From NCBI GenBank assembly GCA_016748015.1, contig JAAOMT010000672.1:257094-321093 (forward strand): a DNA stretch of 64,000 nt, given 5' to 3'. Position numbers and translations under genes: made by a program. The notes below the pieces were generated by a model. The model did not search any database and was not told the origin of the DNA. It worked only from the letters and a program-made list of their open reading frames with translations. This DNA comes from Geosiphon pyriformis uo1. Its lineage: Eukaryota > Fungi > Glomeromycota. Within the stretch, counting starts at the first letter, position 1; each line of letters begins with the position of its first letter. Positions 1,450 through 37,330 of this stretch are shown here, in pieces.

Positions 1450-3875
1450 CTATGAAATATACTCCCAACTGGCCCTGGGTGCATTAGAATCATCCCACAT
1501 TGAAAGAAGAACTGACGCTCGAATCACTCTTGGCAATGTATAAGGAACCTTGTTAAGCCATAAATAGGGTTCCTTCAGATGAAAATAACTCCTTTCTGTC
1601 ATTGCTTCATTAAGATTTTGTGACAAATAATTTCGACCTTTGTATATGGCAGAAATCAAAACGCCATCAGATGGCCAACTTTGTGAGGCAGCCTGTAATA
1701 ATCTAATCACATAACTCGTTTCTTCCATATTGCCACTAGCATTAACAGATGATTGTTCACCCCAGCTACCATCTGCATGCTGCAAGGACAATGCATAATC
1801 TATTGTGGCTCTACAAAAGCTCAAAAGATCACCTTTTGTTTTAAACGAGGTTTTAGAGAGCATCTTTGGGTTTTGTTGAAGGGACAGAAGCACTTGTATT
1901 GATTTCATTGTTGTGTACCACGGACTGGAATGCCAATGATCTGTCCATATGCATTGTGAACTTCTCTGAGATCGAATAAATTCCAAGGCAGGGATAATAA
2001 AACAATCAATTCTTACTCTTTTGGAACCTTCTTCTGTGTCAACATCGACATCAAGCGGAAATTCCAACCTTTTTTTCGCATTTTCACGTTCGGCCAATAA
2101 GAATTGTACAATGTGCACATTAGAACTCGTTGTGAATGCTTCCTCATCTGGAGAGTTGAGAAAGTATTCCCCATTCCAGAAATCGTTAATAAATGGTTCA
2201 AGTTGAATAGAGTAGGAAGGATCGAATTGAGTGATTAAATAATAAGCAATCGCAGTTTCATCGACGCTCGTTGGCATTTTATTGTCAAAGCTAGCTGAAC
2301 GCAAGACACCTTTTTGTTCAATAAGCAATGCTCTGAGATAGCTAATAAAACATTGTAAAGATGCAATCATTTGTCTCAAGATTCGAGATTTTGAAGCACC
2401 TCTTTTTTGTCTTGAATTCATCATTGCGATTTCACCAAGTGATTGCAATACTGCACATGCTTCAAAAATTCCAAGATCACAAATGGTAGGTACTAGCCCA
2501 AAATTGGTCGCGAAGGTAGGTCGTTTCGCGAGCAACCTCTTTAAAAATTTGAACGCCTCATTATCCCAATCGTCTGATCCAATCAATACAGCGGCTGTGG
2601 CAGCTGGTGAAGATCCATAACTGCCATTATTTGCCCGGAAGTCAGAAGTTTGAAAATAGGATAGATTCATAGCCCCAATAAATGCTTCCAGCCAATGCAG
2701 AATTGTCGTACGCTGATGTTCCTCTGCCAAAAAGAAAATGTCTTTGAGTATATTCACATTATTATCCTGAAAAAGTTCGGCCTGATTTGGGAATTCCAAA
2801 GTTATTGGAGGCTCAAATTTTTCCAATTCTGTCAAGTGATAAGGAATAATTAATTCAGCACCGCTTGCAGAGCTGGTTTCGTGAATGTCCCATTGATTCA
2901 AACTAAAAGCAAAAACAGAAATTAGAGGGTCAAATTCCTGAGAAGAAAACTCGTTCTTAATGGCGATACTCAAGTTCAGGATTTATCTCTTTTCTTCTTT
3001 TTGAAAACTCACGCCAATCGTAAAAAAGCCTCGTTCCTTAAAAAAGCATGATCATATTGTTCCTAAAGGTTTAAAGAAATATTAAAAAGACAAATGCGAG
3101 AAAAGTGGAAAAACAATGGATTTCAAAAATGTCAACTGTTTACTCGAGAAATGCCCAATTCAGTCAACTTTTCTTCAAAAAAAGATTCAGTATTGATACG
3201 AAATTTTCCAAGAGCCAAAAGTGTTGCCATAGCACTTGAAACACTTTGATAACCGAAACCATTTGAACCTCCTTCAACATGTTGCACATCGATTAACCAG
3301 GTGAAGCATTCTGGAAATGCCAGTTTAAACTTGCTCGGCATTTGTATCCTTTTATATTGAGCTTCAGGCACCATCGAGAGCCAAGCAGTATCATACCCAG
3401 ACATTGAAATATCTCCAAAACCGATCCAATGTCTTTTCTCATCCTCTGCTGGCCGTTTTGCAGTTTGTTGTGGATTTCGGAAAAAATTGGGAGAAATATC
3501 CCTGGCCATTTCTTCTAATAAATGATTCGTATGGCTCACCAACTCTTCATTCAATATTTCTTGTGCATTAGTCAAATCTGGCGGTTGATTAGGAGGAGGA
3601 GGAGGAGGAGGAGGAGGAGAAAAAGGTGATGATGAAGGTGGCATGACCCTATTTCGGCCACGAGAATTGTAATTTGCAGATGAAATATCCCTCGCATTTT
3701 GACTATTGATCAATGAACTATCTGGTGTTGTTTCTTTAACGTGAAACTTTCGTTTAACGTTTTTATAAAAATTTTTTGTTTTCATGAAAAATTTCCCAGA
3801 TTTTTTTTGTGCTTTTTGAAGAATGTTTAGTTTTTTTGTTGGTATTGCACTGCCGTTTTGGTTGACTGATGACAT
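1450..3875 (-). CDS. Class II terpene cyclase (CPS-like, beta-gamma didomain), paralog 1; variant SVDE motif; ~744 aa
   Basis: Exons 3875-3144, 3062-3013 (50 nt) and 2902-1450, with GT-AG introns in phases 0 and 2. Motifs: SGYDTAW, LHWLEA, NGSYGSSPAATAA, VPTI, SVDETA (2257-2268), SNVH, WTDHWHSSPWYTT, QHADGSWG, NMEETSY, LWLNKVPY. The start Met at 3875 was chosen by comparison with the paralogs; the open frame extends to 4031. Confidence 0.88.
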
Positions 3876-6036
3876 TTTTGAGCGAAAGCGAAAACAGCAA
3901 TCCAGCCAATTGCAAACCAAATCAAGCATAAATGGGTGTATTGTGCGAACATGCACTTGGCCTAATAACCTGGAAACAAACATTGAGCGACTAAGCTGTG
4001 CGTGATCTGCATCAAATTCTAGCTGCATCATTGGTTAATTTTAAAAATTCTTGTTACCTTGTGCACAAACTCGAAAATAAAAATAACACAAAGGCGTCAT
4101 TTATCACAAGTTTTCTAACCATTTTCATTTTTCTCATTATATAGTATATCACACAAAAATGATTAATCCGTAGAGATCTCGATTGCTATCTCATGTGTGT
4201 ATTTAATGCATCAACATGAATTAGTTTCTAATGCATGGATTGAAATCCTGAAAGAAGCTATTTTTGCCAGCTGAAAAGCATTAATTATTCCTCAAATCTC
4301 GCAATATACCAAATTGAATATTTAAAAGTTTTCGAATAGCCAATTATTATTTTAATAATTGAAATCCCTTATTTCCATCACTTGGTGTGGAACATTATCT
4401 ACTGTTTCAGCGAAATGCGGTCACTGATTAATAAAAGCTGGTGTAACGTGTTCTGTAGCAAGTTCAAAGCCACTTTCGACTCTCCACCATTGAATAACAA
4501 CTAAAAACTAAATTGTTTATTGTTACTCGATTCGAAATCTGGTCACCTTGACCTTCACTTTGTTGAATAATTTCATTTTAACCATCATTATTATGAATAC
4601 TCAATTTATTAAACCAACACAAAAGGTAAATCTGAAGTTTTTTAATCTACGAAAAATTGGTGGATATCCTAAATCACATTCGTATTTGCATTTGTATTTT
4701 AAGCAATTATATACAGTGGATTTTGAAGTCAAGGATTTTCAATAGTCTATTTGTAAATAAAACGTAAACATACGTGTTTTTTCCTGCTTGGAGCTATTTT
4801 TAACATTTGTTTCAAAATTTTAGGTTTTTCCATTGGAGAATCCCAATAAAAAATAGCTTTGGTGACGAAATAATTATTATATCCTAAACCTATTGAGAAT
4901 TTAAAAATTTAAATGAATCTTTCAGTTTGGAATGGGATACTTTAGATCAAAATGTAGGTGAAATCAAAATTTCATTTTTAAATTTTTCATTCAGAAATAT
5001 TCATTCTTGTTCTTTAGGAAATAAATTATTTTTTGAATATAAATGTTAAATATGAGAATTTTACTTGTAAATGTACTTTGATTTTATAATTAAAAATTTT
5101 ATCTAATACATTCTATCAATGTATTGTTTTTATCAAAAGAATTTTGAATCAGAGATTGCATCATAATGAAAAGTTCTTTTTTGTTATTGTCAAAAGTACT
5201 GCTAATTCACTTTGAAGTTGACTAATATGTCTTGTGTAATCTCTCTATAGTTACTTGAAACGGTGGGGATAATGAAAAAAGTCACAATATTTGAAACATC
5301 ATGTCAATATTGAAACAAGGAAAAAAAAAGTGCATATTATAATTTTTTAAAGAATAAAACAAATACGGAAAGATTTAAAGAAAAAGATTGTGAACATGAT
5401 GATTACCTAAAATAAGACTAAGTATGACGACCAGAGGTTTTGGCCATTTCATAAATTAAAATTTTAAATTGACAGATATTCAAAATAATTTTATAGCGTT
5501 AGCTTGCAGCAAAATATTTCACTTCAATATTTTGTTGCGAATCTTAAAATTATTTTCTACAACATTTTTTCATTTCTCGTTCAAGGGGTCAACAGTTCAG
5601 TTCCTTTTGAAATCATCATCATGCTATCGTATGCCAAAATAGCTTTGAAAAATTAGTTACCTGAGCATTGGAAATAAAACTTTAGTGAAAAGTGTGATAT
5701 AATAGTCCATTTTTTATTCAAATATTCTATTGAGAACTGAATTTTTGCTAATTTCTTTGAATTTAAATAATATTATGATAATTTTGTAATTTTCCCAACA
5801 CTTTAATTTCTATCTTTTTGAATAAGATATTAGAAAGAATTATAATGATTACTACACGTTAAAACGAGTGAAAGTTGATCTCAATAAAAAAAAATTGAAT
5901 CTCTTTTTGAAAAAAATTTCACTTATTGAGTCTATGTTACTAAATCTACAATTTTTTCTCAATGCTGATGATAGTGTAAATGGCATCAGAAAAGTTAATT
6001 AAAACCTTTTTTTATAATGAAGAAGAGGCTACTAAT

Positions 6037-8503
6037 TTAAAGTGAATTATCCCAAAGCGAGAGTAAAACAGATGCCCGAATAACTCGGGGAACGGTATAA
6101 GATACTTCACTTTGCCACAAAAATGGTTGCTTATCGTAAAAATAATTTTTTTCTGTCATAGATTTAATAAAGAGTTCTGCGATTAATTTTTCTCCTTTTG
6201 CAATTGCAATGTCTATTTCCCAATCATTTATCCAATATTCTTTTGCCGCTTTTAATAATCGAACAACGTAAGTAGTTTCTTCCAAGTTTCCAATAGATCC
6301 CTCCCCAAATCGTTCACCCCAGCTGCCATCATTGTGCTGTGTAAAGAGAGCTTGTTCAACTGATTCCCTACAATATCGTAAAAGTGCAGGCTTATTGCGA
6401 AATGGTGATGTAGAGAGAATTTTCGGATATTGGGGAAGTTTAAAGAGAAACCGAAGGGTCCTTAATGTAGGATACCAAGGACTAGCATGGCATTTATCAA
6501 ACCAGCAGCCATTTTCGTCACGCTGCGATATGACGAAATCGATGGTTGTATGAATAATATGATCGGCATTTATTTTTCGACTATTTTTTGTTAGGATTTC
6601 AATTTTCAGGGGAAATTCCTGCCGTTTCTTAGCTTTTTCACGTTCAGTTACCAAAAGCTCTAAAGCGTGAATATTTGAAGAGATTGAGAAATCCTTTCCT
6701 TGCTTAAAGGATAAAAAGCACTCGTCGTTCCAGAAGTAATTGATCATTGGCTGAACAACATCTCGATGTTCTTTATCAAATGAGGAAACCAAGTAGTTTC
6801 CAACAGCTATTTCGTCAATATTTGCTGAGCGACTCTTCGAATCGAACCAACTCGATCTTGAACCTTTCGTAGCAACCCGGGTTTTGATATATTTTATAAA
6901 ACTTTGAAATGAAACTTTAGTTTGATTCAGATTTGATAATAATAGGGTATTTTCTTCAGTTTCGATTAAAGGTTCTGAAATTTTTTCAGCGATGCAATAT
7001 ATCATCCAATACGTTTCAAGAGTACCAATATCAAGCTTTTGGGAAATACTCTTGTTTTTCAATACTGAAGTTTCCAGGCGTTCGTATAAATTTTTATTCC
7101 ATTCCTGTGATAAAGTAAGATGGGCTGCTATAGCCGCTGCTGATAAGGTACCATAATGATTGTTGTCCTGGAAGTTTTGAGTTTGGTGTTTAGAATAATC
7201 TTTAAAATGAAGCGGTGGCATTAAAGAAGACAAATTTGTTGTTGCTTGTATTTTTGCTGCCTCGTGAAAGATTTCTTCGAGTGACAGTCCAAAAAGATTT
7301 TGATATCTATCCCCGAGGATGCCTCGTTTAGCAGGAAAGACAAAAAAAACCGGAGGATTAAGCTTTTCCAAGGCAGCCAAGTGATATGTGGTCATTAATT
7401 CAAATCCTGCTAAATGTTCACCATCATCCACAGTTAGACGACCAAGCCTTTAAAGCATTATAAAAACATTTAGCAAGTATATCTTATTCCCAAATGCAAG
7501 AAACCTTCAAAAAACTCACATGTCTTGTAAAAAGAGCTCACCTCTGGAAAAAACCTGATTAAATTTTGCCTGTAGTCTCGAAATGATGGGTTATTTTTAA
7601 AATTGGAGTCATGATTGAGAAATTTTAAATATATCATATTAATAACTTTGGTAGAGCATAGTATTGATGACTTACCATGGTTAAACCCAACTCTTGTATC
7701 CTACTTTGAAAGTAAGGACCAGATCTTTCCCGAAACATTCCAAGGGCAAAAAGACAGGCGAGAGCTGTTGGAATATTTCCAAACTCGGTACTATGCTGAC
7801 TTGCTTCATTTACTTGAGAATTTATCAGCCAAACCAAGCTTTCTGGGAAAGCAAGTCTGAAATGGCTTTGGTCTTCTACCATTATGTAATCTGACACAGG
7901 AACCAAAGATATCCAGGCGGCATCATAAAGTGAAATTGTTAAATCCTCGGAATCATTCTCATTTGAACTTTTTTCTTGTATTGCGGAAAATTCTGGTTCT
8001 TGGTAAAATTTTGGTGAAATATTCATAGCAACCTCATCCATTAAAATATTCATTTGTCCAAGTAAATCATTATTGCAAATTGGTTTTATTTCTTGTGTTT
8101 GGGTTTCGAGCACAATTGAAGAGCCTTGATTAGTCTCAGGAACTATAGTATTGGTTTTGAAAGAAGCTGGATCGAATTCTCTACATGTAACTGATAAATT
8201 ATGGGAATCATTTATAGCAGTAAAAGGGATAGCTGTTGAATACGGAATTGGTTGGTTGCTACTTCGTTTTCCAAAAACTTGACATTTGATATATTTATAG
8301 AAATTTTTACTTTTGCCCCCAATTTTTGAAGTGGGCTTTAGAAATTTTCGAAAAAGACTTTTTTTTCCTGTTTGGGTAGTTTCTCTCTTTTTAGAAAACA
8401 TTTTTATAAAGCCTTTAATGTGTTGCTGCTTTTCATAATCACTTTGAAAAGCGTTTTCTCGGAATTCTCGCATCTTAAACCTATTTATGTATTGCCTGAC
8501 CAT
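6037..8503 (-). CDS. Class II terpene cyclase-like protein, paralog 2; most divergent copy, NIDE motif; ~762 aa
   Basis: Exons 8503-7676, 7569-7520 (50 nt) and 7447-6037, with the same intron positions and phases as paralogs 1 and 3. Motifs: SLYDAAW, AGFE, NIDEIA (6811-6822), SNIH, WFDKCHASPWYPT, QHNDGSWG, NLEETTY, PRVIRASVLLSLW. The exact start Met is uncertain. Confidence 0.85.
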
Positions 8504-9739
8504 TCAATCTCAACTAAATAGGCAAAGTACAGAAAAATTATTTCAATTGATCTATTAAGGGATAAAAATAGTAAAACATTTTTCCTGCATAATAAAAGTG
8601 TAATACAGTTATGTACATTTGAAAACTATTTCTTTAAAATTTTGATTGAGTTGAGAGCTTTAAATCAGAACTAATAAAAAAATATGTAAATTTTACTCTA
8701 GTTCATTTCACAAAGAGTTACTATTCATAGAAGTGTAAGAAAATTGTTTATTTTAAAAATAGTTTAGCTTTAAAAACTATGAATGCTGACGCCAAACTTA
8801 AAAAGTATTAATTACAGAATATCAAATATTTAAAGGTTATTTTTTGATTCCATAGAATTTTTCTTTTCATGTGATATAGTTTGCCAAAGTTTACTTTTAG
8901 ATATTTCTAAAATCAAATGACAATTTCTTCGTCAAAAGCTAAATAATTGATTTATGAAAGACTAAAAATTTATTCATATTCGCTTCATATATATAGCAGG
9001 TAATCGTCTTGTATTTTAAAATGTATGCATCATATTTAGAAGGAAATTTATCATTACTTTGAAGACAATTCTACATAAATTGTTCATCATGTTATTTCCC
9101 GGATCAATCAACTTTCCTTTTTCTTCATGTAAGACCAATTTCCTTATGCGGGGGTCTCAAAATCGTTCCATGCTACTTTTATATTCGCTTATATTATCAA
9201 AATTTTCAGCCATTCATATTGGTTTAGAACATTCTGGTCTATTTTTAACTACACTCAAAAATAGGCTTAAAAATACATTTGGTTATTTTTAAATTGAGGT
9301 TAGGTGAGGATTATTTACCAAACAAAATTGGCCAGCCTAACTTTTATCAAAAATGGTTAACAATAAGGATCCGAATTTTTTACTGCTTTTAGAATGGGTA
9401 TTATATAGAAATCAGGTGTATTATCTATTCTATTAGAAGAATGATCAACATTTAATAATAGAGGTTTTGTTGCGAAAGAAAAAACCCCCTATAAAGTGAA
9501 AAAGTTTAATCCTGCTAAATTGTTTTGTTTAATTTTGTTTTAAAAAATAATATTGATCCTAATTGTTAAATTTGATCCCTTTTTATAAGCAAATTGTGTT
9601 GAATTTTCAACATGTCAAATTTTAAATTGAATCTGGCTCCCGAACAAATGTGTTTGTTTGATAAAAGGTAGTCTCAAAAGTATGAACTCATCACAGTTTA
9701 ATTACTAAGATGATATAAAATTTTTATAATGCTATAAAC

Positions 9740-14420: not shown

Positions 14421-16346
14421 TGAAAAATATAAAAATAAACCTATAAATTAGTTATGATATAACTTTTAAGAATTAAATTAAATTTAAAATATGGCTAAAG
14501 TTTATTTAATTGAATTTTTAAAATTGTGTAAATTTTTATAGTTTTTTAAACCATAGAAGTATTTTGTACTTTTTTGGTTCTTTAGAAAGAAAAGTCCCCC
14601 CAAATTATTTCTAAGAATATATCTTTTCTATGATCTCAAACAAAAAAATTTAAAAATTTTACAACAAAATGCAAGCCTTTTTATAAATAAAAGGAAAATA
14701 CTTAAATTATTTATTCATTTATTTTATTTGATTAAAACATCAAAAAATTTGGGTAAACTTGGGATTCTTATAATTTTGATATTGGCATCATAAAAATAGA
14801 ATAATTTTGAAGAATTTAATATAAAACCAGTGCTTTTAACTTAGTTTAATGGCACTGTCGTTTTCGTTAGAAACGCCGCTTGTGTCTACTGACCAGCTTT
14901 GCAAGCGGGTCATAGGGAAAAATATGAGGACAATAGTGGCGGGAAATTGCTCCAACTCTTAAGATAATGAAAGACTGTAAATCTGATTTTTTGATCGAGC
15001 TTCATTCGATCTTACCAACACCACAGAGAATCATTGAGCAGAGAATGAAAGCGAAAGAAAAACCTATTGGACTTATTTTTTTCCATACGTATAAACTGTA
15101 TACTTGAAAATTCTGATTTGTTAAAGTTACTGGCTTTAGGGAAAAAGTTGAGCCAAAATGGGGAAATATTAAAATATCCAATGTGTAAAAATCTAAAATT
15201 TCCCAATGCATCTAGTATTTGAAAGTTGATTGTAGAAAATTTATATTTATTTACCAGTATGCGTGCTCATTAATTTTGAAAAATGAAAGTTCAAAGCTAA
15301 TAAAATTTACAAATTTAATATAAAGGGATTTTTTCCCTGCTATGTGGTTTCAAGGCTTCCAAGTATTAATTTCTGAAAGCATTATAAGTTATCTGAATGA
15401 AAAGCTTGACTTGTGCCTATCTTTGGAACCTTTTTTAAATCAGAAAAGATTAAGTTGGATTGGCACTAAGCTCATCCAATAAAGCTTTTTTAAGATTCAA
15501 AAAAAGGAAAATAACTCAACTACTTTAAAAAAATAAAAAATGATAATAAAAAGTTAAAAAAACTGTTGTAATGGTTTTTTATCCAATTTTAAATATACAT
15601 GAATATTTTTTAAAGTCGTTGTCTGATTTTTATAACATATTGGGGAACCCCAAAAACAAAGTATTGGTTTAAAAATTTATAAGCTTAATATTTTATATTT
15701 AAAACTGTGATTTAATTAAGATCTGTAAACAGTTCCATCTACTTGAAGCTTTTGGTTTTACGACATAAAGCTACAGTAAAAACCAGGTTTTACGATTTAC
15801 CAAACATACACTTAAATACTTCTGGGTGGCTAAAATATTCGGTAATTGTAGTATTTAAAAATTAATGCATATTCCTTATTAAAATATGGTGAAATGGGCA
15901 TCAAAAAAATTGAGGGATCTTATTTTTGATTTAACAATAAATTTTTTTAGCATTCAATATTCACAACCCGCCTTTAATGTGTATCCGCACCTCATTAAAC
16001 AAAAATTTTAAATTTTCATCCCTGCTTTCAAATTGAACCCAATCGGGCGAAATTTCCAATACTTCACATGCATGAGATATCGAAGAATCGTTAAATGATA
16101 ACCTTTATAAGCTCCACCAATTAATGTCATACTTTCCAGTTATGGACGCAATGAAGAGTTGGAAATTGTGGTTAACATTATTGTCACTCTGAAAATAAAA
16201 TTTTTACTCCAAGGTGGTACAATTGACCGAGAGAGTGGATGAGTTACAAAGTATATAAAGCTATGGAGGAAAGTTTTGAAAGGGTAACCAAACTTTCTTG
16301 CATTTAAAGAAAAAAATTCAAAATTTAAATACATTTGGATAAAAAA

Positions 16347-18401
16347 ATGTTGATTCTTACAATCATTCTTATAATATTTGGCTGGTTCATGCTGCATCAA
16401 CATAGAAGATATCGAGCACATAAAGACTTAATGTCATTACCTGAACCAGCTGGGAAATGGCCATACTTGGGTAAATTCAGAGTTGACTTTTATTGCATTT
16501 GGTTGATAGTTTTCATTGATTTCTATCAACCCTTAGGTCACTTACCATTAATTTGGGGAAAACAATTACCTAAAAAGTATGTGTCAAGTTGATCTACATT
16601 TTTTGATAAACCGTTTGCCTTAGAGCTGATTGAGACATCGCACTTATAGGTTTGCAGAATGGGGTAAAGAATTCAGTGGTATTTATATGATTTGGTTAGG
16701 TCAACAGCCTTGGATTATCTTAACGAGTGACACCACAATTCATGATCTTTTGCATATTCGTAAGTTTTAATTAGAAACCTTTGCTATCTATCAATTGAAT
16801 ATTCTTAATAAATAATTTTCTTCTTACCCGCCAACCAGGAGGTGTAAAATATTCCTCACGAAGTTACGCTTATTTCACATGGGAATTGGTTGGAAGAAAA
16901 AGATCATATCTTACATCCCCCTATAATGATTGGTATAAAAAGGCCATGGGGCCAGGTAAGTTTAATCAAGATATTTTGCCTTAGTAACTTTGAACTCAGT
17001 TAACTGAACATCTTTTTAATTCAGCTCATAGTATATTAGGGCAACGCCAGATTGCATCTTATGTCAGCCTCGTAGACGAATGTACAACCCAGCTACTAAA
17101 ATTATTAAAAAAAGATGGAAATTTATCAGAAGGAATTTTCCCACGAAAATATTTTCACCACACTTTCTTAAACGTGATTTTAAACATCAACTTCGCATTC
17201 CATACCGAAGGGCTTCACGATCCTCTATACCAAACCCTGTTTCGATTGACAGAAGAATGGTTCAAGATGGCAGGTGCCACAAAAATATACGATTTCTTGC
17301 CCATCCTGAGATACTTCTCAAATCGAAGGAATACAAAGAAAAAGGCTTTATTACTTCGGGATGAGTGGGAAACAACTGTAAGAGGCCTCTATAACAGAGT
17401 AAAGAATGATCCAAACAAGACTCCTTGCTTCGCTCGAGATTTTATAAAACAAACGGAAGAAGGAACATTAGATGAGTTTGATATTATTCATTTAGCTCAT
17501 GACATGCTAATGGCTGGCACAGTAAGTGAAAGATTTGAATTGTTATTTTAATGAATGTATGAATCTTTCTAATCGAAAATTTTTTAATTTGTAAAACGAT
17601 TTTTTATAGGACACGCTCGCTTCTGCTATGACTTGGTTAGCAGCAATTCTGGCAACTCATCCGGAAATTCAGGCTAAAGCACATGAGGAACTTGATCGTG
17701 TGGTAGGAAAGTCTCGTCTTCCCGATCTAAACGATGAACCATCTCTCCCATACATTCGAGCTCTTATCAAGGAAAATCTTCGTTGGGCACCACCAGTCTG
17801 TATTTAGTTTCTTGTACTGAGGATATTTTTCTTATATCTAATATGTTTGAACTGTTTAAATTATAGGCTCCATTAGGTGCACCCCATTTCATTGAAGAGG
17901 AGGATCAATATATGAAATATCATATCCCAAAAAATAGTGTTGTCGTGATGAATATTTACTCAGTGCATTCAGACGACAAACGGTACAAGCACCCTCATAA
18001 ATTTGATCCCACACGATTTTTAGGCAATAATGAATCCGCCGCTTCCTCGGCTCAAGGGGATCCAAAGAAAAGGGATCATTTTACTTTTGGTGCCGGGCGA
18101 AGACTTTGCATTGGAGTTCATTTGGTAATTCTCATATTATTTTTAGGTCTATGTTTGAAAATGATAATTCGTTTTAACTTCATTGAACAATTACCCTATT
18201 TATCTTTATTTTGACTCAATATAGGCCGAGGTTGAGCTTCAATTAGCAGTCTCACGAATTCTTTGGGCGTTTCGAATTGAGCCTGTAGAAAAAGTAAATT
18301 TGAATGATTATGATTCTTCGTATACACAATGGATAAAACCTTATCATGTTCGCTTTGTACCTCGACATGAAGAGGTTGATAAAGTTTTTGAAGCAATTTA
18401 A
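16347..18401 (+). CDS. Cytochrome P450 monooxygenase, ER-anchored, ~502 aa
   Basis: Eight exons: 16347-16470, 16537-16576, 16650-16759, 16839-16955, 17025-17521, 17610-17795, 17867-18124, 18225-18401 (1509 nt, in frame). Has an N-terminal TM anchor, a Pro-rich hinge ([14 protein letters not shown]), I-helix AGTDT, K-helix ENLR (ExxR), PTRF and heme motif [10 protein letters not shown]. Confidence 0.95.
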
Positions 18402-18666
18402 ATATTTAATCATAGAGCTTAAAGGACGTTTTTATTGTTAATAGATAAGAGGTTAATTCATATTCGATGCAAAAAGGCTTTTCATTAAATGAAGATGTTT
18501 CAAGTCACCCCATAAGGGTCTATAAATAATTTTTAGACATCAAAGAAAATTTTCAAATACATAAACGAATGACGTACAAATATGGTCTCGTATTTAGCTG
18601 TTATATATATTACGAGATTCTTCGCACACATTAAATCGTTAAAAAAATAATGAATCCAAAATTTCT

Positions 18667-20163
18667 TTAATGTTCCTGAACTTGAACATTAATACCAACA
18701 AATAAGTTTGGTTTCTTCACCTCACAATACTTGTCACTTAATGCTTGTATTCTTTCATCAGGATCCATCCAAATTGGATAAAAAAGTATCTTATTAAACT
18801 TCGTCTCAATCCTATGTACAAAATTTTCAAGGGCATCCCAAGAAACTCGATACAATCTCAAATCCAAGTCGTGAAGCGATTTAGGCAAGGCTTCAGCAAA
18901 CATCGGTAAAAACTCTTCGAAATTAGGATCATGAAAGGCGAAGGCTGTTAATTCTTCAAGATATCGTAGATTTGATAAGCATTCCAAGAATTCGATGAGG
19001 GTATCCTCATAAATTGGGATTGAGAGGGAGACAAGGCTTCGACAATATAACCCGATGGCCTGAAAAATACTTCGACTAATATTGTTGCTTGGATGAATTT
19101 TTAATTCTGTCAAGTCTTCCATAAGATCATTTATAACTGGCAACAGAAAGTCTTTATCGAGTCTCGGCCAGGAAACCTCAAACTTGTTTAAGCGAATCAT
19201 GGAAGTCGCCAGAGGTTCCCAGAATTTCGAAACTGGTTCATCACTCGGAAGTAAGCTATTATGTATCTGAATTGTTTTTAATGCAGTCCAGCCGGCAATC
19301 AATGATAGGTCTGGTGCTTTCTTGGTCTCAATAAATCGCAGCGTTTTTAGGTTTTTTGCTTGAGGACTAAGGGCTGATAAGAATTTGTTACATCCCGAGT
19401 CAAAAAGGTAAAAAAATATCTCTTGTAAATGATCCTGATTCTTAATCAAATCTAGAAAATGGTCCCCTAACGAGGGCACAGCTTCTATAAATCGAAAATC
19501 GATTCCAAGACAAGCAAGAAACTTTGTGACGTTTTTAATCTCAATGACAAGATTAATAATATTTGGCATATCTTCACTTTCGAATCGTTGGATATCTCCC
19601 CAATTATAAAAACTTTTCAATTGTGAAAGAACTGGGCCTGCTTGTGGATATTGTTGAAAATTCGGAACACGGGTAATTTCTTCAGCAACGCTATACAGAC
19701 GCGGTGCTCTGATTCCAATATACTCTAGTCCGGTGGAGTTTTCTAATATTATTTTACAAACTGCTGTAACGATCTCAAAAAATGCTTGGCCATCTGTACT
19801 TTCTCCTTTGGGATAATTATCTGAAAAATATCCGAAATCTAATTCTTTGATGAACGAAGGGTAATTGAATGTTGGTTGATTTATTTCTTGAATTTCGAAG
19901 TAATAATTTCGTAAATTTATTCTGTCATCTTCTGAAAGATACCAGAATAGAGTTTGGAAAAAACTAGAAGGAAGTCGTTTATCTTTTTCGGTAGGTTGGA
20001 ATGGGTTTGACCAAATTAGTTTTACAACTTGTCGACACCATGATCGATTTACTAATGCGCAGCGTAAAAGAAAGGATTTTTGGTTTTTAAATTCAGAAAA
20101 AATTTTTTCAAGGGATTCCGCAGGTAGCTGTACTGAGGCTTTGCTGGTATTTTGGGCATCCAT
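18667..20163 (-). CDS. F-box / RNI-like (LRR) protein, 498 aa
   Basis: Intronless ORF with an N-terminal F-box (LPAESLEKIF...LLRCALVNRSWCRQVVKLIWSNPF), a PTFNYPSFIKEL motif and Leu-rich repeats. This type is expanded in Glomeromycotina. Confidence 0.88.
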   Translation of the reverse strand: MDAQNTSKASVQLPAESLEKIFSEFKNQKSFLLRCALVNRSWCRQVVKLIWSNPFQPTEKDKRLPSSFFQTLFWYLSEDDRINLRNYYFEIQEINQPTFNYPSFIKELDFGYFSDNYPKGESTDGQAFFEIVTAVCKIILENSTGLEYIGIRAPRLYSVAEEITRVPNFQQYPQAGPVLSQLKSFYNWGDIQRFESEDMPNIINLVIEIKNVTKFLACLGIDFRFIEAVPSLGDHFLDLIKNQDHLQEIFFYLFDSGCNKFLSALSPQAKNLKTLRFIETKKAPDLSLIAGWTALKTIQIHNSLLPSDEPVSKFWEPLATSMIRLNKFEVSWPRLDKDFLLPVINDLMEDLTELKIHPSNNISRSIFQAIGLYCRSLVSLSIPIYEDTLIEFLECLSNLRYLEELTAFAFHDPNFEEFLPMFAEALPKSLHDLDLRLYRVSWDALENFVHRIETKFNKILFYPIWMDPDERIQALSDKYCEVKKPNLFVGINVQVQEH

Positions 20164-21734
20164 ACCTTAATTTTAAAGTGAAAAATTCAACAAATGTAAG
20201 AGTGAGCTAAAGGCTGTTTTGTAATTCGAAAAACCGGAACTCGAGATCTTTCCCTTTTCATTCAGAGCAATCTTCATTTTGCCGATTTCCCCTTTATTAG
20301 ATTACAAAACCCAGCCCAAAATTGAAAAAATGATCTGTTATGCTAATTGATGTTACAAGGATGTGCCGAAATTGACGAACAGCCTTGGATTCGTCTCGAT
20401 TCCAGTTCCACTGCATAGCCTTTTATCATGAATGCTTATCGATTATCAATAATCTTGGACGCATGAAAGGATAACTATTAACAAGTTTAAAATAAATGTC
20501 ATATTCAGAGAAAAATTCTCTTTTCAATTTAGTAAATATTTTATCCAAAAGTTATTTATCGAAATTTATTAAACAACAAATAGGTCCTAACAGATGTTGC
20601 GTACCGAAAGTGCATTGATAATGGAAAGAACAAAAAAAACAAAGCGTAAATCTAACAGGTATTATTTGTTAATTCATTTTGATAACTGAAAGTTTTGAAA
20701 ATCCTGTTTTTGATAAAAATTAACAAAGCAAATTGTGATTTGAGATCAAAATTTAATATATAGAGATTGTGTTTTTTAATTCAAATCAAATACGAAAACC
20801 AATATTGCAAAAATAGAAAAACATCCAGTTTTTTTTATAATATTTGAGTAACCCAAGAAGCAATCAGATTTATAATAATCCAATAAAGAAATATTTAATT
20901 TGATGTTTAAATGCAATTTTTCCAAAAGATTTTATTTACCCAGAGTGACAAAATAATATTGAGTATAATTATTTTTTCCAATATAATTTACATAAAAAGA
21001 ATGACTTAATTGTAATTTCAATAAATAAAAGAATTTAAAAGAGAAAATGAAAAGAACAGGGAATTATTTATATATATTTTATTATTTATTATACCTTCAA
21101 ATCAACTTTTTATATATATAAAACATTCAAACTCAAAGTTACGTCTTCAGGTTTTTTCTCCAAGGTTAACTTTTTTAATTTAAGACTTAAATAACACATA
21201 AATTGTGTTAATTATTAGGATTTCTTGGAAAAAAAAGATATTTAGTTTTAAAATTCTATTTTGGTGCAAAATATATTGAATGAAAATTATATATTAAAAA
21301 AATAATTTATATTATTAATAAACATGTAACTTGAATACTCAAGTTTTATCAATTTTAAAAAAATAATAAGTTAAACTTTATGTTTAAATTATATCTAATA
21401 TAGTTTTTTACAATTTTAATAAAAACAATACCCAATATTGAATTAATGTTTTTTTGTAGCTTTGAGTAATATTACTTTTATACATATTAAAGGTAATCAA
21501 TAAATAACTTGATGTCTTGGTCAATAATTAAGTTAATAATTTTTTTTTGATATTAAAAATAGAAAATCTAATTGATTAATATTATATGAATAATATGCAA
21601 AAGAAATATAGCCTTAACAACATATTATATATAAATTGGTTAAATTGATAATTAATTAAACAAAATTCCAAAAATTGGTTTTATAAATTTTATACTTTAT
21701 AAATTAATAAATTTAATTAAAAATAAATTAAACA

Positions 21735-21768
<34 letters not shown>

Positions 21769-23695
21769 GTCGTATAATTATTTTTATTATTATAATTTTG
21801 TAACTTAAATTGCCTTTTATAAATAAAAATCTATTATAATACATATTTTTGTGTGCAAAGAGTTAATTTTATTTATGAACAGAAAAATGGATAAAAACTC
21901 CATAAGCTCATTTTAACATATTACTGAAGGCATTAAAAGACTTGAAGTCAGATGAAAGTTGAAAAGCAGTTTATCTCTCCTTTTTTTGCTTGCATACTTG
22001 TTTCTTTCCTTTCAATTGAAATATGCTATTAAGAATTTCACAGTTTTTTTTATAAAATTACAGAGAAATTAATGCAAAGTCTCAGTATCAATCGATTAGG
22101 TTTAACCCCTTGAATAAGCCAATTTTAACAATCTTAACTCGGGATTTAACTGAGGAAGCAAAAAATTTGATTGGCTACAATTTTATTGACATTCGGCCTA
22201 GAATGGTTTGAGGTTGATTGATCGAGTTTTACTCATAAATTATCGTAATTTCCTTTGAGACAGGAAAAAGTTTGATTATTTTGAAGCTAATTATGGGAAA
22301 GATTTCAGAAAAGTGATTATTTTGAGCTAATTATGGCAACGATTTTAGGAAAGAGAAGAATTCAACAAAAACCCTTTGTTTCAATTTTTTTACAAAAGTT
22401 CTAAACTTTAAATCAGAACAATAGAAAAATATCGACTAATTGTAAGATAAAATTTTTTTACTTTAACGACTAAAAAAAATACATTAATCCTTGTCTTTTT
22501 TTGTCATTGAAATGATAAACTTTCCATTAAGATAATCTCTTCAGATCTGCTTCAATGGGATTTTCCCAAGACTTATTTGTATGCAAAATTTACATTCTGG
22601 TATATACCGTATTAAAAATTGGATGGAAAACTCTTTAGTTTAAGAAATTAACGTTTGAATATGGTTGAGCAAGGATCTAATATTTTTTGAGAAAATGAAA
22701 GCCAATAATGTAATCCATTATGTAAATATGTATGATTCATGATGAAAAAAATCTTTGGCACAAAAATTTCGGTCATGAAACAATGGGTATGATTTCTTTT
22801 AAAGGAAATAAAGTTATCACTTGCATAGATATACGTCATGAATTTTAATATTAATCTAATAGAACCCAAAAATATGGGGTTTTGGTTGGTTGGTTGGTTG
22901 GAAACCAAGATAAGGTTTTTCAAAAAAAAGTGGTTCTCCTTTTTGGGTAAGAAATACAGACGATCTTAAGCAAACATTATTCAATTGACATTCTCAAAAA
23001 CTATGTAGCTTAAAATTACAATTTTTTGTGAAATGAACTTCATTATTGACGATTATACAGCCTCGATTGATTTTATGCATTTGCCAATTCTTCCTTTGTG
23101 TACCTTTTTAGGTAAGGAAACAAAGAATCTGAAAAAGGGCAAATTCTAAAAATATTTTTTATTTCCTCAGCTATACAAAAACAAACTCTTTACAAATTAA
23201 CTCATATTCGGTGTGCTTTTAAAAAAAAGAATGAATCTTCAAATTAATTAGATTTAAGAATTTTATCCATCATAGTATAAATGATGACATCTAAAACTTG
23301 ATTATTCAATGGAACGTTCGCATTTTTGATCCTAGCAAACAAACAGCTGAACTAGTTTAATAGGAACAAAGTTTTTCCGATTTTTTAATATGGAATTTAT
23401 ATTTTGATTCAATTTAAGAAAAATACTAAATTTTTAAGGTTGTTGACGCATAATGGATAAGGTTGTCAATTTTTTTTGTTCTTACATTAAGAAAATTAAA
23501 AGAGATCCTTTGTATTTGACCAAACTATTCATACGATGGATTAATAAAAAAATTCATTCAATTAAATTTGACAGAATATTCGTTTTAAAAAGAGTTTAAA
23601 CCATTATTGGGTTTTAAATAATAAAATCTCGATGATGCTAATATAAATATCCATTGGCAACTAGAAATTGTGAACACTATTTACATCTATAATGG

Positions 23696-23733
23696 ATATT
23701 TGCGTCCATTTGCTTGCAAATGGACGCAAATAT
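23696..23733. repeat. Perfect 18-bp inverted repeat with a 2-nt loop
   Basis: atatttgcgtccatttgc-tt-gcaaatggacgcaaatat. Confidence 0.9.
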
Positions 23734-25404
23734 AAAATTACACCTAATCAAATAATCTTTGTGTTATAGAAAAAAGGATTTGAATGTGGCTTAACTTTAA
23801 GTAAAATATATTTTTAGGATTACATATGATCAGCAGGCAAAAATTCAGGAGTTAGATTTTATTTGCTGGAAATATTTTTAAAGTTCAACCATTGATTTGA
23901 AACTACTGGTTGTTAGTTAAGCATTAGGTTTGGATTTAAACCTAATATATCTTTGAAGGAACCAATTATTTCTTTTAGGTCATCCAATTTCATCAATGTT
24001 TTTCAAAATTGGTAACCCAGGAATCTGTTCTACATAAAATTCTGGGTGTTAACTGCCAAAACACGAATGAATAAAAGTCCTCGCCGTACATAATTCTTGT
24101 GTTCGATTTAACAAATTGAATCATGAAACATTAAAGTTTAAATCATTATGTAGATAGTGAAAAAGAGTGTTACTAAAGTAAAAGAAACTTCTGGGAACTT
24201 TTAAAAATAGTCATAAAGTTATAATTAAAAAATTATAGCTTAATGAAGTTGTTCAGTTGTTTAGGTGCTAACCTGGTTTCTGAGATAAAATTTATCCCTA
24301 AAGTTACATTTTTTAGTTGAACCCAAAAAGCCAAGTGGGACCAATTCATAATGTGTATTTTGATTTAATTATTAAAAACAAAGTTTTCTTTAAAAAAACG
24401 CTTTTAAGAAAAAATAACCATGTGTAAATTTTTTTTTATTGCCAAAATAATATTATTCACGTATCACAATTCCAAAAAAAATGGACACATACTTATAGCC
24501 TGGGAATTTTTCCTGTGTATGCAAATTTATTTGGCAGACCTCCTTGAAACAGAAGATGGGACGAGAAACCTTTTTTTTGCTAATTAATTCGAAATTTAAT
24601 ATAATAATCAACCAGAAAATTTATTATCGGAATATCAATGCAGAACATTGAGCCAAAGGTATCGTATCTGGGTAACTTTAAAATTTTTATCGATTTCGAT
24701 TACTACTTCCAGGGTTGATTTCCTTTTAGGATAAACATGCGTTCGATCCCAGCGACTGAGATTGTCAAGTTCTGCAGAAAATTTAATTAAAAATTTAGCC
24801 CCAGGTCTTATCTTTTAACCCAGTTTTTGGTTTTTATGGTAGTACAGATTGAATATCCCGGAAATTCCTACATTTTTTTACTATTTGTAATTGAAAGATT
24901 AACGTTTCATTGGCCTTTTCAAATTATTTTTTTCTGTGTGTATGAACAATCCCAAATTGCTAGATTTTGGGCCCCAAAAAATTATGAACAATACAAAGAT
25001 TTTTAATAAAAACTTGATTAACCCCTAAAAATTCCAATTGACCAGAAACTCGCTACTAACGCCCAAATTTTAAGTTTTTCGAGTAAAGGACTATGAAAAT
25101 GGCTATTTAAAATAATAGTAAGAATATAAGAAAATTTTTAAAGACCCTACAATTTGTACGGTTTCTCTAATTCTAATTGATAGTCCTATTATGCAACGAT
25201 ATCCTTGCACAATCACCAGATTATTTACCTATCTTTGTTCGAATATAATATGTGCAAGATACCAAAAGAAGCGAGCCTTTTTAATACACAGTCATAACCA
25301 TGTATAACTCATTGCAATTATCAAAATGGAATAGGTTAAACATATAACCTATCGCTTTTCCTCCCAAGCGATGAATAAATATTATAACTGAATCTAAAAT
25401 CAAG

Positions 25405-25536
25405 AATTTGTTTTCGTGTGACAGCTCTGTGAATATTAAAAATTATATTTCCAGGAATCAAATAATCTTAAATTTGTTTTCGTGTGACAGCTCTGTGAAT
25501 ATTAAAAATTATATTTCCAGGAATCAAATAATCTTA
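25405..25536. repeat. Exact 66-bp tandem duplication (2 copies)
   Basis: Unit aatttgttttcgtgtgacagctctgtg...caaataatctta occurs at 25405-25470 and 25471-25536. Confidence 0.9.
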
Positions 25537-27032
25537 AAGTTGTCTCATTCGAAGTTCAATTTCCCAAACCAAGATTCTGGGATCCAATAATTGCTCCTTT
25601 TTTTTTAAAGTTAAATCGTAATAAAGAAGAGGAAACACCCTCGTTTTAAAGTTTTAGATAAGCAAGTTTTTAAAAAAGCGTTATCCATGTGTCAGGGAAA
25701 AGAACAAATTTTTTCTTTAATTTACAGATCTTTTGGTTAATGAAAATCCAAATATTACTTTTCTGGAGCCTTTAAACTTAAAAGAATTTATATTCATGCT
25801 CATTTGGAGAAATCTAAAAGTTACACCCTTATTATTTTTTATTACCAAATGATATCTTTAAAGTTAAATAAGAAATTCCTCGTGTGACTAGTTTACCCCT
25901 CTTCTGACCCAGTGAACTTTAACGGGAAAAACCTCGAAGTGGTAGATCCCAAGATTTTCAAGCAGAAGAAATGAGGTCTATCAGTGCTTTAAATATATCT
26001 TTAGAAAATTTTATTAGTTCACCCCCTCCCCCTAATAGTAACTCATACATCATCAGAACGGTGATAGTAGAAAACTGTTTGAAACTTTCTCATATTTAGT
26101 GATCTCAGTTGAAATGAAATTTTCCAAGACTATAAATCAGCAGTTCAATTCGAAAATTTTCCTTATCATGTTCCTTTTGCTCATTATCAGCAATTAAATT
26201 ATTGTTTTTTTCAGTTTTATTAATTATAGACATGAATGAAAAAGCATGGAATTTTGGTACATGTAAGTACTGAAATCATATTTAAAGTTAGGACACAATG
26301 TTTTACTCCGACGGCGACGTTAAGCATACATAATGCATTAGACTAATCGTAATGAGAAACTTTAACGATTTAAAAAGGGTTTGGAACGCCACAGAATTCG
26401 AACCTACAATAATGATATTTAATATCCGAACCAGATCTTGAAATATTGCCCACTTTTCATCCCTTTATAGATGTGTTTGATCAAAAAATGGCAAACCCTT
26501 TTATGCACTGTTTAATTAACCAACAGGGAAAAAAAAAATTTTCCTCATTTAAATGTAATAGATAAAGCATTAATTAACATGGTTTATGAATAAAGTTTTC
26601 TTGGATAAAAAAGTTAGGGGTTCATGCCGAAAAAGGATATTCTTCTAGCATATAGTCCGACATTAAAAACATCAAATCATAGAACCTTCCTGCCAATTGA
26701 ATTAAGGTTGCTTGGAGTGTAATTCCAACGAAGATTCTTTTTATGTGCAAATTAACGGTCCTTCATTTTAGCTTGGTCTGACATTTAGAAGTAAATGAGG
26801 TTTCAATGTACACCGATCTTGGTGAATTTTAGGGGTATCTGATCCCAAAAACACTCGCGCCAAATATAAATACACCCGGGTTTCGGAACTTTTGAGATTC
26901 ATGTCTTGAAAGAAATAAAAAATCTTTGAGACACTTGAACTTTCTATAAATCGGGCTCTTTTTATCTCTATCTAAACTTCAATTCTTCAATTTTAAAAAT
27001 ATCAAAAACTTCCTTTAACAATTTGATAATCA

Positions 27033-29441
27033 ATGCATTCTGTTCGTGAGACGAATAGTGACGCAGGAATTCAAACATTTTTTAAAAAGGCACAAAATGG
27101 TTCAGTAAGAATAGCATCAAAAAGTAAACAATTTTATAAAAGTTTAAAAAAAAATATTCAAAACAAAGTCAAATATGGTCCTGAAGATCAAGATGCAACT
27201 TTCCATAGCTCCCCTCAAAAAAGTTCCTTCTACAGTACCTCATTGTCAAGCCCCAAAAATTCTTCATTTGTATCATCCCAAATACATCCGGCTTCATTGA
27301 AACATAATGATCCGTGTCCAAAAAGCGAGTCAATTTCATCGCCTAAAAATGTTCAACATATCGAAGAGGTGTCCAAATTACAGCTAGTTCAATACACAAA
27401 CGAATTACTATACGAAATAGCAATGGGTATATCTCCAAATTTTTTCCAAGATCCGACTGAATCGGCCATACTGACCACAGACAAACAAGAAAACACCGAA
27501 TGGGTTGGTTTTGGGGAGATCTCAATGTCTCCGTATGATACGGCTTGGGTTGCCATGATACCAGTTCCAAAATATAAAGAGACCCTCGATCCTCAAGATT
27601 TCCAGTTAGCTTTTCCAGAATGCTTCATATGGTTATTATTTTCGCAAAAGCTTCACGGTAGATTGCCTCACGTTGGTCCAGGATGTATCAGTCCTTTCTT
27701 TGCAATTCTTTTGGCACTTGGGATGTTTCGCAAAAGAAGCGGTCCCTACTTTGAACAAAAGCTTCGGGAAATGAATATTACACCGGTAAACTTTTTACAA
27801 TTGATGGTTTTTAAAATTGAGAAATTCAATCCTTTGATCATTATTTAACAATTCATTTTGATAATTAAAAAAGTATCACTTTGAACGATTTTTTGAAAAA
27901 ACGCGAGCCCAACTTAGAAAAGCGTAAGTAATTAATCTGCAAAGCTTTTTTTTGATCTATTAATTTTATCACTTATTAATCTTTCTTCCTTATTTGAATT
28001 TAGATTAAATGAATGGGATATTGATGAAATTGATTTTTCTGGATTTGAAATTATTATTCCTTATCATATGAACGAATTAGAAAAATTGGATCCACCCGTT
28101 ATCTTTGACTTTCCAGACAAACAACGACTTTTAAAGGAAAATCAAAGAAAAATGAGCATACTGCCAGTAGATGCTATCTTTGCCATGGCAGCTAATCGTA
28201 AACCTGTGTCAATAATTTATTCCTTAGAGGCTTTAAGTGGAATAATCGACCTTTCGCGCTGTCAAAACCCAGGATTTCAGGCATTGAATGGTAGTTACGG
28301 GGGATCACCTGCGGCTACAGCCGCAATTCTAATTTCGGCGCCAAAATGGGACCACAAAGCATACGAGTTCTTAAAAAAAGCTATAGAAAAAAGACCACAA
28401 TACGCTGGAGGTTGTGGTTACGTGCCCACGGTCTACGATGTTGGTACATTTGAGATATGTTGGGTGATGCATTGCCTTGGTGAAATTGTCTTGAAATCAT
28501 CTCAGCAAAATACCTTAAACATTCCGTCTACGCTTTTGGAAAAAACCAGAGCTAATTACGGTTCTTACATTACTTATTTGAAAACCATCCTTGAACATCA
28601 AAAAGGAACTTTACGGTGGACCAGTTATGACAATAGAATTCCAGCGGACGTAGACGATACAGCAGTAGCTTATTTCTTGATCACACAATTTTGCCCAAAC
28701 TATAAATTTGATCTGGAGAAATTGATGAAATCTTTTTGGAATGGCACATATTTTATTACATTTCCAAAAGAACGTACATTTTCAGTGAGTTGCAATTCCC
28801 ATGTTCTATCACTTTTAATATCACAGTACGAGATTGTCAAAAAGCAACAACTGAATGGTGATTTGGAGACAACAACTCAGCTACCGGCTGAATCATCAGC
28901 AATCGACTTACATCATGTAATTGTTGCAACCACCAATTTTATTAAATCACAACGTAAGGAAAATTTTACATGGTCAGACAAATGGCACAGTAGCCCTTGG
29001 TACACAACGATGAAATCGATTTCGACTCTTCTAAACCTACAACATTATCCTGAATTGCTTTCTGCAACTTCGTTTAAAACTAAAGAAGCTCTCTTTGAAT
29101 TCTGTGGTGAATCAATTGGTCGTGCTCTATCACTTCAATATCCTGATGGCAGCTGGGGTCAACGGTACATTGATAATTCATCTGGAAACATGGAAGAAAC
29201 TAGCTACATCGTAAGACTACTGCAGGCTGCAAAAAAAACCTGGATAAAAGATAATGCTATTTTAGAAGCAATTACAAAAGGACGTCAATTTTTGCTTGTC
29301 CAATTCGAAGATGCGGTCACAGATCCGAACTTTTTCCATAATCAAGAACCCCATTTGTGGATTGCTAAACAACTTTTTACCGCACCACGAATCATTCGTT
29401 CATCGATACTTCTTGCACTCTGGGATGAATCGAATGAATAA
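27033..29441 (+). CDS. Class II terpene cyclase (copalyl-diphosphate-synthase-like, beta-gamma didomain), paralog 3; intact DxDD; ~746 aa
   Basis: Exons 27033-27785, 27874-27923 (50 nt) and 28004-29441 (2241 nt, in frame). Motifs: SPYDTAWVAM, DFSGFE, IYSLEAL, NGSYGGSPAATAA, VPTVY, DVDDTA (28647-28658), FPKER...CNSH, WSDKWHSSPWYTT, QYPDGSWG, NMEETSY, LWIAKQLF. The stop follows directly, so there is no alpha domain. Confidence 0.93.
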
Positions 29442-36166: not shown

Positions 36167-37330
36167 TTACATTGAAGTCAAGGCAACCGACACCCCAAAA
36201 TATGGACCACCATGAGCGGGGTCAATTTTACACAGGATATCTGGAATGGAATTGGCACATTTCTAAACAAAAGATGTTATTAAAACTAGAATGTTATTAA
36301 CACGCACATGAAGAATTTGAAACATTCTCTAGCATATTTTAGAATTAGCATACATCATTTTCCCGGCCATCACACTCTCTGACTGGAGGTGACGTAGAGT
36401 TATCATTACTCATTATCCACATTTCTTTCCCGGCATGTTCATACCCAAGGAAGTGAAAAGGTACATGTGGGATGAGATCGTTGGTATGAGTAGTGCGAAT
36501 CAAAGAAATCTGTTTGTCAATATAGTCTGCAAATATCTTGTTTCCAACACGAGGTTGGCCAAATGTATATACAAAGAGATTTTTCCCTGGGATGAAAGAA
36601 GACATTTTTTCTTTGATATCGAGACCCTTTAATACTGCCAGGGCTAAATTTCCAACAGTCATTGTTAAATTAGGTTTAGCATATATTTAATCAAATAATC
36701 TTACAAAAAATGATTCAAAGCTTACCACCACCCAAGCTATGCCCAGTTACATAAACATTAAACGTGGGATTTTCTTTGATAAGTGGGTCTAAAAATTCCA
36801 TAAGGTAACCTTGCGTAGAATGAAACGCGTGTAAAAACCCAGCATGTACTTGAGCTCCAGGTACCAAAGGATAATCATCCAAGATTAGAGTTTTGTCAAT
36901 AAGAAGGTTTATTAAACTTCTCATTGATGTCCCACGGAAGGCAACAACAATTTCTTTTCGCAATGTGTTTATCGCGACGTAAGCTTAATATAAATTTTTT
37001 TAGCGAAAATTTTATTAGACAAATGTTAAGAAAGAGGAGAGCCCGAAGATTTTGCATGAGCCTACCTTGAGCATTAGTAATATTTGCCTGAATTACAGCA
37101 ATAACTCGTGTTCCTTGAATCAAAGAACAATGACGACAATTCCAGTTTTGAATTTGAGCTGCATCATAATAGGCAATTGTAGAATATATTGCAAAAGTTG
37201 CGAGAGTTCTCTCAGTTTCTTGTGAAACTAAAGGTGGAGCTCTTTTTATATTTCTCTTGCTGACTACATATTGAATATTTATGGAAAGAAACAAAAGAAA
37301 AATTATAAGGAAACTTTTTGTATGTCCCAT
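36167..37330 (-). CDS. Secreted class 3 lipase (Rhizomucor-lipase-like alpha/beta hydrolase), ~302 aa
   Basis: Exons 37330-37066, 36983-36726, 36643-36354 and 36262-36167. Has a signal-peptide-like N-terminus, IVVAFRGT, VHAGF, nucleophile GHSLGG, YTFGQPRVGN, NDLIPHVP (Asp), and C-terminal CANSI...H..PYFG (His). Confidence 0.93.

Follow-up and report, generated by a model that had tools for sequence, protein, structure and literature searches.

A 64,000-nucleotide stretch of the Geosiphon pyriformis genome (contig JAAOMT010000672.1, positions 257,094 to 321,093; the window) contains three class II terpene cyclase genes and one cytochrome P450 gene within 28 kb. By sequence, the predicted cyclases belong to a class II cyclase subfamily that is new for fungi and was seen here only in Glomeromycotina; the kind of enzyme is known. 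On balance, we favor the view that the locus is a local expansion, within Geosiphon or Archaeosporales, of a family of stand-alone beta-gamma class II cyclases, and that the P450 is a bystander or a recent lineage-specific recruit rather than a conserved partner. One of the three genes, cyclase paralog 3 (par3), is an expressed, canonical member of the family and is directly testable. The family is widespread in Glomeromycotina and stands alone elsewhere; thus, what the locus chiefly reveals is the family and its expansion here rather than an established cluster. Arbuscular mycorrhizal (AM)-type fungi are considered to have almost no terpene cyclases or secondary-metabolite clusters. The claim of a cluster in Geosiphon is weak, and the value of the locus lies chiefly in the cyclase family.

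Cyclase genes and proteins

Gene models were searched exon by exon, never as joined sequences, and the frames were checked arithmetically by script. The cyclase features and their positions in the window are as follows.

Cyclase paralog 1 (par1), 796 aa: exons 3144-4031 / 3013-3062 / 1450-2902, minus strand; splice and phase check
par1 motif SVDE: 2257-2268, minus strand
Cyclase paralog 2 (par2), 762 aa: exons 7676-8503 / 7520-7569 / 6037-7447, minus strand; intact frame, splice check
par2 motif NIDE: 6811-6822, minus strand
Cyclase paralog 3 (par3), 746 aa: exons 27033-27785 / 27874-27923 / 28004-29441, plus strand; matches in the Protein Data Bank (PDB), AlphaFold (AF2) model
par3 motif DVDD: 28647-28658, plus strand
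par3 QW motif: 29136-29159, plus strand

An earlier reading of the letters alone, the first-pass annotation, had counted three cyclases and one complete P450 among the five genes of a 28-kb span, and these four genes lie where it placed them. Its guess of a Glomeromycotina-like fungus was also correct. The source is G. pyriformis (Archaeosporales), and par1 is 99-100% identical to the GenBank protein G9A89_019631 (P0011) of this species. The assembly (128.3 Mb in 792 contigs) contains exactly three copies of the cyclase, which are par1, par2, and par3.

Pfam gave only subthreshold SQHop_cyclase matches for the cyclase exons and the full-length orthologs (15-19 bits against a cut-off of 26), and PDB and fold searches were therefore used to classify the proteins. 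The large exon of par3 was compared with PDB sequences by phmmer. The best match is a fungal copalyl diphosphate synthase (CPS), 8v0f (E 2e-22, 83 bits, residues 178-504), followed by 9q3i, the bacterial ent-CPS 5bp8 (58.6 bits), and Rv3377c (6vpt). An AlphaFold model, limited to par3 exon 3 and based on an alignment of 52 rows, reached a pLDDT of 88 and a pTM of 0.90. Foldseek placed 6vpt, 5bp8, 7xkx, and 9q3i first with this model, and the three bacterial structures at the top (6vpt, 5bp8, and 7xkx) matched with E values of 3e-16 to 6e-13 and a TM of about 0.6. Drimenyl diphosphate synthase, plant CPS, and squalene-hopene cyclase (SHC) ranked lower. These data identify a beta-gamma double alpha-barrel fold in par3 that is homologous to CPS and SHC, and the CPS-like class II assignment of the first-pass annotation holds in both sequence and fold.

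The three Geosiphon proteins terminate after the beta-gamma domains, and the C-terminal class I alpha domain with DDxxD that marks bifunctional CPS/KS enzymes is absent from them. A class I synthase was not found in the Geosiphon genome by searches with the alpha domain of the ascomycete protein P0068, PF03936, and PF19086; these are negative searches, the PF19086 search had no positive control, and absence is not proven.

The closest known systems differ from the Geosiphon proteins in architecture or in context. The structures 8v0f and 9q3i, known as PvCPS, the bifunctional copalyl diphosphate synthase of Penicillium, provide the best sequence match of a solved structure, and PvCPS shares the beta-gamma fold, DxDD, the QW motif, and fungal origin. 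However, PvCPS is ~960-990 aa long with its cyclase fused to a prenyltransferase alpha domain, whereas the Geosiphon proteins end after beta-gamma and carry, in contrast to PvCPS, a variable Lys-rich N-terminal extension; the two are only ~21-28% identical. The bacterial proteins Rv3377c (6vpt), PtmT2 ent-CPS (5bp8), and Tpn2 (7xkx) have in common with the Geosiphon cyclases the beta-gamma-only architecture, the length of the catalytic core, and DxDD. The product of Rv3377c is halimadienyl/tuberculosinyl diphosphate. The bacterial stand-alone cyclases differ in that they are intron-less, lack the N-terminal extension, and usually lie beside class I synthases or prenyltransferases; their identity to the Geosiphon proteins is ~22%. 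The drimenyl diphosphate synthase of Streptomyces showdoensis, SsDMS (7xq4 and related structures), shares the beta-gamma class II fold with par3 (structural match E about 1e-6) and acts on farnesyl diphosphate (FPP). It gave no significant sequence match to par3. The SsDMS motif is DxDTT, whereas the DxDD of par3 is the form typical of diterpene cyclases.

The acid motif separates par3 from its two neighbors. The par3 protein reads DVDD, as do most orthologs, whereas par1 (SVDE) and par2 (NIDE) lack DxDD and keep the central Asp alone. Work on AtCPS and squalene-hopene cyclase established the central Asp as the general acid. The DxDD chemistry that the first-pass annotation ascribed to class II cyclases would apply to par3 and most orthologs and not to par1 or par2. 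par3 is the sole Geosiphon copy with DxDD, and the choice of par3 for expression in that annotation is supported. Integrity was scored in the large exon at 45 columns, each conserved in at least 85% of a superfamily sample. The number of columns kept is 44 in par3, 41 in par1, and 31 in par2. The C-terminal QW motif (Q..DGSWG) shows little or no variation, and all three proteins carry it. The Lys-rich N-terminal extension (motif SKSKxFYK) is common to Geosiphon, Ambispora, and Paraglomus and absent in Diversisporales. par1 and par2 are probably altered-function or decaying copies. Their SVDE and NIDE might imitate the oxidosqualene cyclase motif, which has a single Asp and serves to protonate epoxides.

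Motif variants occur throughout the clade, whose other members include DVDN, DADN, DVDTT, and DVDI forms. Four fast-evolving Ambispora paralogs (P0022, P0062, P0024, and P0025) have lost the central Asp (DINH, EINC, and KINY) with their frames open. The Entrophospora proteins P0017 and P0023 read DVDTT, the motif form of drimenyl diphosphate synthases, and P0021 and P0061 read DVDIT.

All three genes follow a single plan in which a 50-nt micro-exon separates two long terminal exons. Their introns are all GT..AG, and there are no internal stops. The Paraglomus ortholog has an equal three-part layout, and the intron positions are common to Paraglomus through Geosiphon. The micro-exon plan of the three copies therefore indicates duplication at the DNA level of an old intron-bearing gene; an origin as retrocopies was considered and is ruled out by the shared introns. 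The copies have diverged considerably, with par2 and par3 only 38% identical. par3 is 51-53% identical to the Paraglomus and Ambispora orthologs, its closest relative by identity is Ambispora P0005 (56%), and the canonical genes of Ambispora and Paraglomus are its nearest neighbors within the clade. The tree shows par3 as the basal member of a grade; the par1 and par2 branches of this grade lead on to the fast-evolving Ambispora paralogs (support 80-91), and par2 is the most divergent copy (end branch 0.97). This order suggests that the duplications probably predate the split between Geosiphon and Ambispora.

Distribution and origin of the family

Database searches recovered 25-30 proteins, 588-841 aa in length and with E values from 1e-74 to 1e-208, and every one of them is from Glomeromycotina. 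The genera are Paraglomus, Ambispora, Funneliformis, Cetraspora, Gigaspora, Dentiscutata, Diversispora, and Entrophospora. The family is thus present in every other glomeromycotan genus recovered, is intact in most, and is missed by Pfam-based miners. No member from Rhizophagus was among the database matches, and a survey of five Rhizophagus irregularis genomes reported no terpene cyclase prediction (PMC7466969). A description of the glomeromycotan cyclase family was not found in the literature searched, which agrees with the statement of the first-pass annotation that it knew of no described pathway matching the locus.

The glomeromycotan cyclases group in a single clade (support 100), and the stem leading to it is long (branch 1.0). 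The next-best matches outside the clade are metagenomic proteins of the 'halimadienyl-diphosphate synthase' type (514-552 aa, 138-151 bits), ahead of Ascomycota CPS/KS at 94-116 bits. These scores, together with the stand-alone beta-gamma architecture that the family shares with bacteria, raise the idea that it entered the ancestor of Glomeromycotina by horizontal transfer from bacteria, gained its introns later, and has no ancestry in common with the class II domain of the bifunctional Dikarya enzymes. The free tree places Ascomycota as sister to the glomeromycotan clade, but the support is weak (88, branch 0.033) and the placement was flagged as long branches meeting. Constraining Glomeromycotina to group with the bacterial-like clade improves the log-likelihood by 2.2 units, and the resulting tree is not rejected (p-AU 0.567). 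Against a bacterial source, the top sequence match among solved structures is fungal (8v0f at 83 bits compared to 58.6 bits for 5bp8), and the origin of the metagenomic sister proteins could be inferred for one cluster only (Thermoflexales). We consider a bacterial origin quite possible, if short of probable. The intron positions held in common from Paraglomus to Geosiphon mean that any such transfer would be ancient.

The P450 and its linkage to the cyclases

The P450 gene lies between par2 and par3. Its features, and those of the gene that follows it, are listed here.

Cytochrome P450, 502 aa: 16347-18401, eight exons, plus strand; Pfam p450, spliced contig, frame check
P450 exons: 16347-16470, 16537-16576, 16650-16759, 16839-16955, 17025-17521, 17610-17795, 17867-18124, 18225-18401, plus strand
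P450 ExxR (ENLR): 17772-17783, plus strand
P450 heme loop (FxxGxRxCxG type): 18086-18115, plus strand
F-box-like gene, 498-aa open reading frame (ORF): 18667-20163, minus strand; Pfam F-box-like, 27.6 bits

The gene is complete, as the first-pass annotation had it. Three exons score above the cut-off for PF00067 (41-73 bits compared to 22.8), ExxR and the heme loop are both present, and the 502-codon frame is intact with an N-terminal membrane helix (microsomal) and an I-helix AGTDT that is split by an intron. A tblastn comparison with Ambispora and Geosiphon P450s covered residues 40-480. The nearest relatives of the variable exon 5 (17024-17521) are Ambispora proteins, Geosiphon paralogs, and Acaulospora proteins at 40-45% identity, and the P450 belongs to a lineage-restricted subfamily. 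A housekeeping role in sterol metabolism (CYP51 or CYP61) was considered and is unlikely because the nearest solved structures are CYP1/2/17-type, not CYP51.

Expression was assessed with one public run (X1, 2019). The run is labeled as probably DNA, yet it yields spliced contigs and is therefore cDNA. Of the sampled words of par3, 41% were found in the run. Over window positions 15000-20999, a 1,285-nt P450 contig spans 16752-18353 with four of the seven introns removed (GT..AG), and other contigs cover the F-box gene (18556-19847). We did not detect contigs from the intergenic DNA of the same interval. The P450 and par3 are both transcribed; the data establish presence of par3 words and spliced P450 in one run, not co-regulation.

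The P450 contig begins at 16752 after 11 unmatched G/C-rich letters and retains predicted intron 3 (16760-16838); its 5' end may reflect either incomplete splicing or a start inside the gene. For exons 1-3, which lie outside the spliced part of the contig, RNA support is absent. The run differs from the assembly at four sites in the F-box gene and at none in 1.3 kb of the P450, which suggests allelic or inter-nuclear variation or a different isolate.

The synteny of cyclase and P450 on which the first-pass annotation proposed to test its cluster was not found in relatives. A related P450 lies within 10 kb of a cyclase at none of ten loci in eight other Glomeromycotina species. At the loci of Paraglomus occultum, Diversispora epigaea, Ambispora leptoticha (two), A. 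gerdemannii (two), Gigaspora margarita, and Funneliformis mosseae, no P450, related or not, was found in this interval; they were checked by called genes and tblastn, except for the Funneliformis locus, which was checked by called genes only. The two closest homologs of the P450, both from Ambispora, have no cyclase nearby on their short contigs. Entrophospora sp. SA101 does have a 539-aa P450 (L019:1608-3330, minus strand) 4 kb upstream of, and divergent from, cyclase P0017 (L019:7348-9595, plus strand). This protein is 24-30% identical to the Geosiphon P450, and does not match the exons in the window; the Geosiphon proteins closest to it are encoded on contigs C704 and C513. It represents another CYP family, and the adjacency in Entrophospora is thus independent. 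In Funneliformis mosseae, a full-size ABC transporter gene (1456 aa, L020:2733-8849, minus strand) lies 1.1 kb upstream of, and divergent from, cyclase P0006.

The Geosiphon locus itself holds no prenyl synthase, class I synthase, phosphatase, transporter, or regulator. A geranylgeranyl diphosphate (GGPP) synthase is not linked to it, and the three polyprenyl synthase loci of the genome are on other contigs. The P450 is 8-9 kb from the cyclases, with AT-rich tracts and the F-box gene between. The 10 kb to the left of the window (L016, C717:247094-257093) contains low-complexity repeats and gaps with no extension of a cluster. Farther left (L015, C717:237094-247093) are an HMG-box gene (L015:6777-7925) and an MFS transporter gene (L015:1304-2777); they are 9-20 kb out and were not counted as cluster members.

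Function of the locus

The proposed role of par3, the conserved, transcribed, and canonical copy, rests on analogy with its family. The substrate would be a prenyl diphosphate, either GGPP or possibly FPP, whose terminal double bond would take up a proton from the central Asp of DVDD, and the product would be a bicyclic prenyl diphosphate of the labdane, halimane, clerodane, or drimane type. Since searches of the genome turned up no class I domain, release by a phosphatase would follow rather than a second cyclization. A pathway of class II cyclization followed by P450 oxidation would parallel the gibberellin-type clusters of Ascomycota, which combine a bifunctional alpha-beta-gamma diterpene synthase, a GGPP synthase, and several P450s. 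The CPS/KS proteins of these fungi (P0067-P0071) are detectable homologs of the Geosiphon cyclases. The Geosiphon locus differs in having no class I domain found, no linked GGPP synthase, a single P450, and no conserved synteny.

The first-pass annotation had read the locus as a terpenoid cluster. In a true biosynthetic cluster, par3 would make a bicyclic scaffold, possibly aided by par1 and par2 working on modified substrates, and the P450 would oxidize this scaffold to a secreted signal or defense compound. The components of such a cluster are in place as far as the cyclases and a complete P450 are concerned, and both par3 and the P450 are transcribed in the same run. The P450 sits between cyclases, is of a non-sterol type, and comes from a lineage-restricted subfamily, and the neighbors of the Entrophospora and Funneliformis cyclases would fit such a pathway. 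The missing synteny at the ten loci, the different CYP family in Entrophospora, the wide spacing, the lack of linked GGPP or class I synthase and of the other pathway genes, the loss of DxDD in two of the three cyclases, and expression data that record presence in one run all argue against it. We regard a true cluster as rather doubtful, and functional coupling of the P450 with the cyclases in any form is equally so. The preferred reading, a local expansion of the cyclase family with a P450 that is not a conserved partner, has several observations weighing against it. The ~61 P450 loci in 128.3 Mb, a hand count and a lower bound, give a chance of ~1-2% that a P450 falls within a 28-kb span, perhaps 4% with uncounted loci and uneven gene density; this estimate is post hoc. 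The contigs of the relatives are mostly short (13-57 kb), which sets the reach of the synteny comparison at 10 kb, and the independent Entrophospora adjacency means that coupling may be commoner than estimated. On the enzyme side, the N-terminal QDxxGSW motif, which the orthologs keep, is degenerate in each of the Geosiphon copies, and an enzyme activity has not been reported for any member of the glomeromycotan clade.

An alternative is that these proteins are not prenyl-diphosphate cyclases. They might use a different substrate (an epoxide or a nonphosphorylated polyprene, for example) or serve a noncatalytic binding function, which would make the P450 irrelevant. Identity to any characterized enzyme is only 26-30%, the stem of the clade is long, the fourth motif position varies (D, N, T, I, or E), and the central Asp is lost in some Ambispora paralogs; the subthreshold Pfam scores and the failure to find a class I partner in the genome point the same way. 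However, par3 and most orthologs keep DxDD, the QW motif, and nearly all positions conserved in the superfamily, and comparisons of both sequence and fold put class II diterpene or drimenyl diphosphate synthases closest, with squalene and oxidosqualene cyclases ranking behind them. A role outside prenyl-diphosphate cyclization is improbable on this evidence, and the class II cyclase family with its expansion in Geosiphon remains the reading that we prefer.

If par3 is active, it would provide the first terpenoid scaffold from an ancient symbiotic lineage and would raise the question of its action on plant or cyanobacterial partners. Geosiphon pyriformis harbors the cyanobacterium Nostoc, not plants. 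In a broader scenario, an ancestral stand-alone class II cyclase of Glomeromycotina would make a bicyclic terpenoid without a class I synthase for symbiosis or defense. It would have been lost in Rhizophagus, and Geosiphon would have triplicated it and recruited a P450 to give the first AM-type terpenoid pathway, possibly a signal to Nostoc. We put this forward as speculation that is unlikely to hold in full.

The window as a whole is AT-rich (15-38% GC). The interval between par2 and the P450 (10001-14000) has extreme AT-richness (15% GC) and a strong GC skew at 12-14 kb and probably consists of decayed repeats. The F-box gene next to the P450 is probably unrelated to terpenoid chemistry. Three further genes were noted to the right of par3.

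36345-37330, minus strand: class 3 lipase gene (Pfam Lipase_3, 52.6 bits; two or more exons) whose N terminus resembles a signal peptide
47270-48105, minus strand: seven-transmembrane receptor-like gene with weak Dicty_CAR and Git3 matches (fungal GPCR type)
58052-58984, plus strand: second F-box-like ORF; an assembly gap of N letters comes after it (59200-59700)

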